16,736 bases of DNA from Ginkgo biloba. Lineage: Eukaryota > Plantae > Ginkgophyta. Location of the stretch: assembly GCA_024626585.2 (NCBI GenBank), contig JANKJI020000004.1, forward strand, positions 176,305,723-176,322,458. Reading direction: 5' to 3'. Made by a program: the position numbers and the translations under genes. The notes under the pieces were generated by a model. The model searched no databases. It was not told where the DNA came from and saw only the letters and a program-made list of their open reading frames with translations. Each line of letters opens with the position of its first letter. Position 1 is the stretch's first letter. Positions 8,255 through 13,395 of this stretch are shown piece after piece.

Positions 8255-11200
8255 GTAACCTCACTACACCTCTCTTTCACTCTTGATCCTTGTATGTTAA
8301 ATCTTCTGTCTATATTTTTGTAGGGGTTCAAAGCACTCTGAGATTAAATCTCTCGCCCACATTTCATTCTACAGGTCATATTAACGTAAATGCCTAAGTT
8401 TTTGTTAGGGTTTGAAGACGGTGCGAAATGAAACCCTTGAATAATTTTATTCCTAGCCGTTATCTCAAGTCGATTGCCTGCGTTTCATAATTCATTACAT
8501 GAAAGGTTCTTATAGTAGTGTGTGTATGTATGTATGTTATCTAGGGTTTTAAGGCTGTCCATGAGTCAATCTCGAATGTCTTATGGTGTAAATAATTATT
8601 TTGCTAGTGTTAGATGCAATCACGAATATCAATAGAATTCGATGTAGTGATGCATATTGACTTTGGTAATTGCAGTAGTAGGGCCAAGCGAGACAGTCAG
8701 TACGGCCGAGAATAAACCGACTGAAGATCCGACCAGTTCTAAATATACATGGACAATTGAACACTTCTCAAGACTAAGTGCGAAAAAACATTATTCTGAA
8801 ACTTTCGTAGTCGAAGGTTATAAGTGGTGAGTTCTGTTTGCCGTATTGTGCCTGCCTTTCTACACGTTGATTCTAACGGGCTTATTAACCCTAATGTAAC
8901 GTGCAATCTTGCGATGCAGGCGAGTGTTAATATTCCCAAAGGGAAACAATGTCGACCACTTGTCTATGTACTTAGATGTCGCGGATTCTGCTACGATGCC
9001 TTATGGTTGGAGTAGACATGCCCACTTCAACCTCGCTGTTATCAATCAGATCAGTTCCAAGTTTAGCGTTAGGAAAGGTATGGTTTCTCAGGCTGTCAGA
9101 AGGAATTAACGTGTGTTGTTATTTCGCAGTGTGTATTTTTATCCTTTGGTATGTTTCAATATTCTTTGGTTATTGTTATTATTCCTTATGTGCACCACTA
9201 GGTACCATAGTGTAGTGGATGTTATTTGATACACCCAATGAGAAGATTAGTTCTATTATTTTTTACCTTATTCTCACAATATACATTTTATACAAACAAA
9301 CAAACATGAAAAAAATGTGTGTCAACGTGCCTCTAATAGTTTTGTCTCCTAACCAAAATAAATGGATTGGTCTCATAATTCCTCTTCCTTAATAATTCTA
9401 ATCACTAGTTAGTTGGATAATATATGAAGATCTTTATGCTCTAAGAGTGAAGAGACTATTGCTTCATAAGAAATATTGAAGGATCCCTCTAATTCATCTG
9501 TATTGTTTAATAGCTTTAGCAATATCCTTCAACCCATGATTTACCCATATCATATTATGAGAAGCCTTATCCTTATAACCTTAGAGTAAAACTTGATGCT
9601 TAGAATTAAAGGATTTGAAGGTAATAAGGTAGTATAATAAGTTTGGAGGCTATCTTTACCTGCTTTCTCCTCACAATTGGTAATAGTGTAGTTATAACAC
9701 TTTCTTCTTCCACCAACATGATGATATCTAATCTCACTACCTCTCTATAGGGTAGTTAGAGTTATATTATTCAATCCTTCTATTTTTGGTTTCAACATGG
9801 TGCATCACTTTGAAATATCAATATGCAGTTTGGTTAGAGAACATTTGACTTCTGAAATCCTCTTACATAAATAAATAATAATTTTTACCAGTGTTGCTTC
9901 CATCCTTTCTTTAATCTAATACAATTCAAGTACTCACTATCATCTTTATCCTTGATACCTCTAATCATTTTAAATTTGATTCTTCCATCACTTGTTACAT
10001 TTCTACTATTGAAGGTCCAACAATGAAAGAGAGAACCCTATCTTTTAGAATTTCATGTTAGAATGGTTGAATCTCCATCGATTCATGATTTATAAAATGT
10101 TCTCCACCATAAAAAAGGCATGATGAATCAACTCTAAATGCCATTCTTTGATAATTCCAAGCTCTCCTTTAATTCATTCACTTCTTTCCTTTGAAGGTTC
10201 TTTTGAACCTACATTTTGTCCTCCAATTGAATAGCATAAAGAGTTAGTTCTATTACTAAGCCTACAATCTATTCCTAATTCATTTTGAAATTACAACATC
10301 ATTCTACTTGTAGTATAAAAACCCTAATTACGTTTCTATGTAACATGTAAAAATAGTATAGAGAAGGTCGTTGGTTCAGTCTCCCTCAAAAGGCAACCTC
10401 GATAGAGTCAATCCATCCAATTTAAGAAGAAGAGAAGGTCAACCTCCTTCCCCCAAAAATATCTTACAAGGGATGAATAAGAAAGTGGACAAATGCTACA
10501 ATGGGTGAATGGGGAAGTGGACAAATATTACAGTGGGTGAATGAGGAAGTGGGTGAACGTCACAGTGGGCGAATAAAACAACAATAAAATGAAGCACTGG
10601 GCGATTGAGGAAGGAACAATCTCATCTTGTACATATGCTCTCATATCGCCTAGCCCTATCTAGCTTCCAGAGATCCCTACCCCCAAAGAAATAGACACAA
10701 GTGAGTTCCTAAAATATAGAGAAAGGCCTTCAATCAAGGCAACAAAATTGAAAGAGGCCAAAGGGGACATTGCAGATGGTCCTCAATTCATCCTTGAAGA
10801 AACTAAATTCTTTAGGAAAGGGAAAACACCATCAAATGAAGTGTTTTTCATGGAATATCAGGGGTTTGGGATCCCTTTGTAAGAAAAAACTCCCTCAAAT
10901 GGACAATATACTTAGAAAAAATAGACATAGTATTTGTGCATGAAATAAAACTCTATTTTAATAATCTATCACTTATCAAGGATTAAATATGGAAAGACTA
11001 CAACATCATAAGTTTTAATGCCATAGGAAAGTATTGAGGTTTAATAGTTCTTTGGATGAGCACCACTCTCTAAATATTAAGTAGTTATATCCACCCTATA
11101 TAGATTCACTTACACATGAAAGACACGATTTTGGAAAGAAAATTACACTTTTATAATTTTTATGGCCCCAATAATCATATGAAAAAAATAGAGAGCATGG

Positions 11201-13395: not shown

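Follow-up and report, generated by a model that had tools for sequence, protein, structure and literature searches.

Two anciently diverged MATH modules face each other across an assembly gap at a UBP12/USP7-type locus of Ginkgo biloba, probably as parts of two transcription units

Introduction

In deubiquitinases of the MATH-USP7 family, the MATH domain stands at the N-terminus and is followed directly by the Cys box of the USP catalytic domain, an order that Arabidopsis UBP12 (AT5G06600) and UBP13 (AT3G11910) share with the genes considered here. The plant members have been described with one MATH domain in the surveys available (PMC3664471, PMC10218331), which agrees with what an earlier note on this DNA had said of USP7, UBP12 and UBP13. 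In UBP13 the MATH domain is required for binding of CRY2 (bioRxiv 10.1101/2021.04.29.441934), and in USP7 the main peptide contacts are D164 and W165, which bind P/A/ExxS motifs (PMC7419626). Human USP7/HAUSP (PDB 2xxn, 1yy6), compared here with the protein of a gymnosperm-like transcript (L013) as the query, has a homologous MATH domain with the DWGF motif; it differs in having a single MATH domain and a remote sequence (E 2e-10).

Here we describe a locus of Ginkgo biloba in a stretch of 16,736 nucleotides (hereafter the window; GenBank assembly GCA_024626585.2, contig JANKJI020000004.1, positions 176,305,723 to 176,322,458 of the forward strand). Unlike UBP12 and UBP13, it carries two copies of MATH exons within a single scaffold; the usual first coding exon is missing from copy A, which begins in what was formerly exon 2. 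Our search of the literature found no study of MATH-UBP genes in Ginkgo or other gymnosperms.

Results

An old duplication of a MATH exon pair

The exon pair that encodes the N-terminal and middle parts of the MATH domain occurs twice, as A2 and A3 on the left of an assembly gap and as B2 and B3 on its right (Table 1). The exon coordinates, the equal length of the two second exons, the introns of 93 nt (A) and 99 nt (B), which have GT..AG ends, and the lack of any stop or indel in either pair were all reproduced from the sequence as the earlier note had given them, and so was the symmetry of module A, which at 309 nt and phase 1-1 is frame-neutral and would stay in frame if spliced to C4. A3 and B3 are identical at 119 of 158 nt and at 40 of 52 residues, and 18 of the 40 codons for the shared residues differ synonymously, again as reported before. 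Over the 186 coding nt that A and B share, the NG86 method gives pS 0.68 (95% CI 0.51-0.81), pN 0.12 and dN/dS of about 0.07; these values argue for an old duplication with both copies intact under purifying selection, and a pS of 0.68 rules out a haplotype or allele copy, so that the earlier claim of an ancient origin stands. In B3, S replaces the conserved P of F-P-K and Q replaces H; A3 has the consensus there and is more changed elsewhere.

Table 1. Features of the gene region (window positions)
Feature	Position	Strand	Remarks
First exon, copy A	7830..8254	+	Long 5' UTR, ATG at 8182; continuous RNA depth, joint 8254>8676
Exon A2	8676..8826	+	151 nt; linker and N-terminal part of MATH-A; sequence, Pfam, RNA
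Exon A3	8920..9077	+	158 nt; middle of MATH-A; onward splice to unassembled A4; sequence, Pfam, RNA
Intron after A3	9078..11215	+	No RNA depth; 32-bp tandem repeat 10465-10574; LINE-endonuclease-like frame, presumably decayed, ~10833-11215, reaching the gap
Assembly gap	11216..11315	.	Unsized; contains 5' part of B2, maybe A4 and much more
Exon B2, 3' tail (MATH-B)	11316..11347	+	Sequence, RNA
Exon B3, middle of MATH-B	11447..11604	+	158 nt; sequence, Pfam, RNA
Exon C4	11852..12117	+	End of MATH-B with DWGF, then USP Cys box; RNA joint from B3 only
USP catalytic-domain exon (E5)	12344..12562	+	RNA, Pfam UCH
USP catalytic-domain exon	12712..12820	+	RNA and match to plant loci
USP catalytic-domain exon	12924..13039	+	RNA and match to plant loci
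USP catalytic-domain exon	13297..13395	+	RNA; onward splice to I-N-D-R-Y-E-F-P exon beyond the assembled window (32 loose reads)

The spliced gene model was compared with databases exon by exon. Pfam MATH_2 matches were returned for A2, A3, B3 and C4, and UCH matches for C4, in which the G-A-T-C motif is intact, and for E5; an N-terminal MATH domain is therefore present on both sides, and on the B side the Cys box follows it directly. The window holds a single DWGF/Cys-box exon, as the earlier note had stated. The exons map one-to-one on genomic plant UBP12 loci, with boundaries equal to those of the loci fetched, junctions confirmed in RNA and 79-97% identity to angiosperm UBP12 members. By analogy with those genes, the B side would work like an ordinary UBP12, its MATH domain recruiting substrates and its USP domain cleaving ubiquitin. 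An exact look-up of ten window ORFs in the protein collection gave no hit, and no ORF of the same species was found among the C4 homologues.

At the 5' end, alignment to the gymnosperm-like transcripts L013, L015 and L026 places the first exon of copy A as the homologue of exon 2 of canonical UBP12, and the usual MTMM..PPP first exon is unused. Copy A is transcribed from within the former intron 1, with RNA unbroken to 8254; the exon start at 7830 is the start of the stretch examined with RNA, and a contig of sample X19 extends further 5'. No RNA joint was found at an acceptor-like AG near 8194. The letters at 7414-7458 read M-T-M-I-F-M and resemble a decayed canonical first-exon start, and a similar match at 5992 suggests chance.

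At the other end, the exon that follows 13395 had no match in 13396-16736; absent from these 3.3 kb, it lies past a long intron or in another gap. The family's His box and C-terminal UBL repeats (USP7_ICP0_bdg, USP7_C2) would fall beyond the assembled window, where RNA reveals just the start of this next exon. Within E5, 65-80% of the X24 reads carry three linked changes in 12460-12487 (at 12460, 12472 and 12478; a D to E change that restores the family consensus). The main X19 contig has the window letters at 12460 and 12472, and deeper contigs of other transcripts share the sequence from 12479 onward; the variant may be allelic, mark a tract of gene conversion or come from the reads of a paralogue.

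An unsized gap in a scaffold of short contigs

Ten gaps break the window into contigs of 1-3.4 kb, on a sequence piece of more than 100 Mb, and since seven of the ten are exactly 100 N, the gap lengths are uninformative. The two sides of the gap at 11216-11315 are not continuous: RNA places exon letters inside it, and its left flank ends in the open frame at ~10833-11215. We take this frame, by its motif resemblance, to be a decayed LINE endonuclease; a Pfam search of it gave no match.

A contig of X1, a DNA run of 2022, abuts 11215 and 11316 with 0 letters between them, which taken literally would make the gap zero in length. It matches the window at all of 5,489 letters, including sites at which both RNA samples depart from the window, and all X1 contigs lie at depth 76-85; the contig is most likely the assembly itself with the Ns dropped. 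Exon letters stand left of 11316 in two RNA samples, so this contig cannot represent the intact locus, and the same letters rule out a gap of zero length. In its behaviour X1 resembles reads generated from the assembly, and joins in this genome should not be taken as independently supported by it. An 8,980-nt X1 record that matches 11884-11904 was considered as a sign of A4 elsewhere and rejected, since that stretch differs by only 2-4 letters even in angiosperms.

RNA junctions and the hidden exons

The transcript evidence comes from raw polyA reads of X24, covering some 6% of that run, and from the contigs of X19; a further sample, X21, contributed 2 reads. The earlier note had proposed counting the junctions 9077>11852, 11604>11852, 8254>B2, and 9077 to B2 or to an exon in the gap. 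The second is well attested in X24, with 44 reads, as are the joints 8254>8676 (33 reads), 8826>8920 (28) and 11347>11447 (27) and those along the USP exons after C4 (18, 54, 38 and 25). Both modules are present in transcripts, both sides of the gap are spliced and expressed, and no link was seen between exon 1 and B2 or between A3 and C4. The loose ends behind 8254 enter A2 only (agreement 0.99), which leaves 8254>B2 at 0 reads. Per letter of exon, the A side has a normalised X24 depth of 37.7 and the B side one of 34.5. X19 depth, at 156-329 on the A side and 170-254 on the B side, agrees within two-fold; on the left it climbs from 156 to 329, and a second climb follows on the right, from 170 to 254, a pattern that weakly resembles two 5' ramps.

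Past 9077, 10 loose X24 reads enter an exon that is not in the window, A4, which reads D-T-Q-H-Q-F-N-A-R in codons of its own. A4 is visible for about 18 codons, the loose ends covering 30 letters, and over these it keeps its protein sequence. Because A3 splices to its own A4, MATH-A is complete in its own right. Four reads had been scored as 9077>11852, each with at least 6 mismatches, and these fall at 11859, 11865, 11868 and 11877, the positions at which A4 differs from C4, and at 11883; given this coincidence, the four are A4 reads mis-laid on the homologous C4, and the count of true 9077>11852 reads is 0. A4 was sought in the assembled part of the intron after A3 without a match, so that location was rejected.

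On the other side of the gap, 37 X24 reads and one X19 contig run left of 11316 into exon letters absent from the window (L-S-R-L-N-V-K-K-H-Y), and the 5' part of exon B2 is unassembled. With A4 likewise missing from the assembly, the gap probably conceals at least 2 exon pieces. No RNA read or contig in X24 or X19 links or separates A4 and B2. An X19 contig of 981 nt that holds B2-B3-C4-E5 extends 359 nt 5' of 11316 without laying on A3.

Nearest relatives and other two-MATH proteins

A metagenome scan with B3 yielded 52 plant loci, all with the same exon order and none (0 of 52) with a doubled MATH exon set. The closest are three gymnosperm-like full-length transcripts, L013, L015 and L026 (1,105-1,120 aa, single MATH), which group together, apart from the angiosperm-like rows. 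L013 (P0494; a JGI transcript contig of 1,112 aa) is 82-87% identical at the nucleotide level to the B-side exons and 76% to the A side; like that of copy A, its ORF starts without the canonical first-exon peptide, and unlike the window it has a single MATH domain and is full length.

The B side is nearest L013 (pS 0.51 over 221 sites), a grouping with L015 being rejected and one with L026 borderline. Exon 1 together with A2 is also nearest L013 (pS 0.55 vs 0.72-0.75 to L015 and L026), and A3 alone stands at paralogue distance from all three (pS 0.57-0.68). The sequence distances thus suggest that both halves most likely come from one UBP12 sub-lineage. Since both are nearest L013, it is unlikely that the window joins two of the three old paralogue lineages (an L015- or L026-type half with an L013-type half); the pS values of exon 1 and A2 disfavour such a join, and AU tests are compatible with it. 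The distances point to a split of A and B near or before the separation from the L013 lineage, or to faster change in A. Trees built from 174-363 letters gave no resolution (p-AU of 0.079 for an A+B clade; support of 80/80 for A+L013), and neither trees nor distances can tell an internal duplication from a gene duplication.

A conserved two-MATH USP7 family was found neither in the literature nor in the protein collection, which holds other species than this one. Among the best 120 each of 1,542 full-length and 209 shorter homologues, ordered by score so that two-MATH proteins head the listing, no more than five two-MATH USP entries appeared, all of them angiosperm gene models, from Cocos (P0152), Actinidia (P0155), Shorea (P0153), Hibiscus (P0156) and Diplodiscus (P0154). 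All have nominally two MATH domains and a USP domain, as scattered single models of differing layouts, two of them with identical internal repeats, and from their sequences they look like fused neighbours or assembly duplications rather than a family. A representative protein search gave the same picture, with two-MATH USP proteins scattered only.

One transcription unit or two

Three arrangements were weighed, and the odds we attach to them are judgements, not computed values. We favour two transcription units, the left one being either a full paralogue or a MATH-only gene, over one tandem mRNA, with a probability of about 0.65. The earlier note had placed first a different model, in which splicing would insert either A or B, as mutually exclusive two-exon cassettes, between a common first exon and a common DWGF/Cys-box exon, giving one catalytic core two recognition surfaces. 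Module A has the equal-phase, frame-neutral length that such a cassette needs, and its splice to C4 would be in frame; but the upstream exon was joined to A2 only, never to B2, and C4 to B3 only, with no true 9077>11852 and no 8254>B2 read in X24, the one informative raw-read library. A3 has a third MATH exon of its own, and the counterparts of the USP7 peptide contacts D164/W165 (PMC7419626) fall in the DWGF exon, common to both forms under this model. We regard this model as refuted for practical purposes. The second arrangement is a single gene with a single mRNA, in which an internal duplication would have produced MATH-A, a linker, MATH-B and USP, with both MATH domains always included and the exons in the order A2-A3-A4, hidden exon(s), B2-B3-C4. 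The equal X24 depth on the two sides and the two-fold agreement in X19 fit it, as do the shared proximity of both halves to L013, the kept protein sequence of A4 and a dN/dS of about 0.07 on A; there is one assembled 5' end and one gene body, so little need be hidden. Against it stands the 359-nt RNA contig that stops short of A3. A short tandem design would hide an exon of about 260-290 nt (the rest of MATH-A, some 141-170 nt, plus 119 nt of B2), and the contig would then have touched A3; that design is excluded, a tandem gene requires some 330 nt or more of hidden exon, and giving B its own 5' end calls for no further assumption. An in-frame tandem design is possible as a four-exon phase 0-0 unit in which a full-length A4 is followed by a duplicate of the first exon and by B2. 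The divergence of A and B also exceeds what a duplication after the split from L013 would lead one to expect, this nearest relative has one MATH domain, the homologues listed and the literature hold no conserved two-MATH USP7 family, and the residues mapped from the USP7 groove look alike in A and B, so that a second specificity is not evident from sequence. We consider it rather doubtful, then, that one mRNA encodes a deubiquitinase with two complete, anciently diverged tandem MATH domains, both under purifying selection. If it does, this would be a natural two-MATH USP7, a layout absent as a conserved family from the protein collections and papers searched, with one catalytic core and two docking sites for substrates or E3 ligases; it might bind at two sites with avidity or hold a substrate and an E3 ligase on the same core, a coupling with a precedent in UBP12/13, which engage CRY2 and COP1 through different surfaces, and it would offer a direct test of whether a doubled substrate-binding domain gives avidity or substrate-E3 coupling.

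The main form of the favoured reading of two transcription units, with about even odds among all the arrangements, makes the left contig the 5' end of a UBP12/USP7-type gene and the right contig the body of a second, full paralogue. The left gene would run through exon 1, A2 and A3 into its own A4 and presumably on into its own gene body; the right gene would have its own promoter, first exon and 5' part of B2, all unassembled. Their common origin would be an old duplication in a single gymnosperm UBP12 sub-lineage, and they would meet across the unsized gap either as neighbours whose middle is unassembled or through a homology-driven scaffold join. Each would yield an ordinary single-MATH deubiquitinase, in which MATH picks the substrates and USP removes the ubiquitin. 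Two full paralogues are consistent with the larger distance between A and B (pS 0.68) than between B and L013 (0.44-0.51; Fisher p 0.03-0.05), with an A+B clade that barely escapes rejection in the AU test (p-AU 0.079), with the single MATH domain of L013, L015, L026 and a Taxus protein, and with the lack of doubled MATH exon sets at the 52 loci. The 359-nt extension of the X19 contig and the make-up of the window, 1-3 kb contigs joined by 100-N gaps, count in their favour too. The near-equal X24 depth on both sides speaks against them, and so does the finding that exon 1 with A2 and the B side are both nearest the same gene. UBP12 genes have about 31-32 exons, and no exon of a second gene body was found in the assembled sequence between the two sides. 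That burden falls away if A is a partial duplicate, a short gene with MATH only that ends soon after A4 and lies directly upstream of a normal UBP12 (B), where it would serve as a non-catalytic substrate-binding adaptor or competitor, like the MATH-only UBP12 derivatives of flowering plants, whose mark is a stop or an unrelated coiled-coil exon behind the MATH part. Such derivatives are common, some with locus tags near UBP12 models, and the 359-nt contig is compatible with one; but their identity usually falls to 55-70%, while A3 is still up to 85% identical to canonical UBP12, with a dN/dS of about 0.07, and equal depth on the two sides would be a coincidence, all of which makes this variant improbable. 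If two genes do meet across the gap, the locus would add an extra gymnosperm UBP12 paralogue, and it would show how a gap-ridden assembly can mimic alternative splicing.

Repeats elsewhere in the window

Upstream of the gene region, an inverted repeat pair of about 600 nt (2698-3299 and 4415-5041, 71-84% complementary) spans another gap, at 4000-4099, and probably represents two copies of a repeat element. Further upstream, 1473-2141 is a direct repeat with a period of 327 nt and 85-88% identity.
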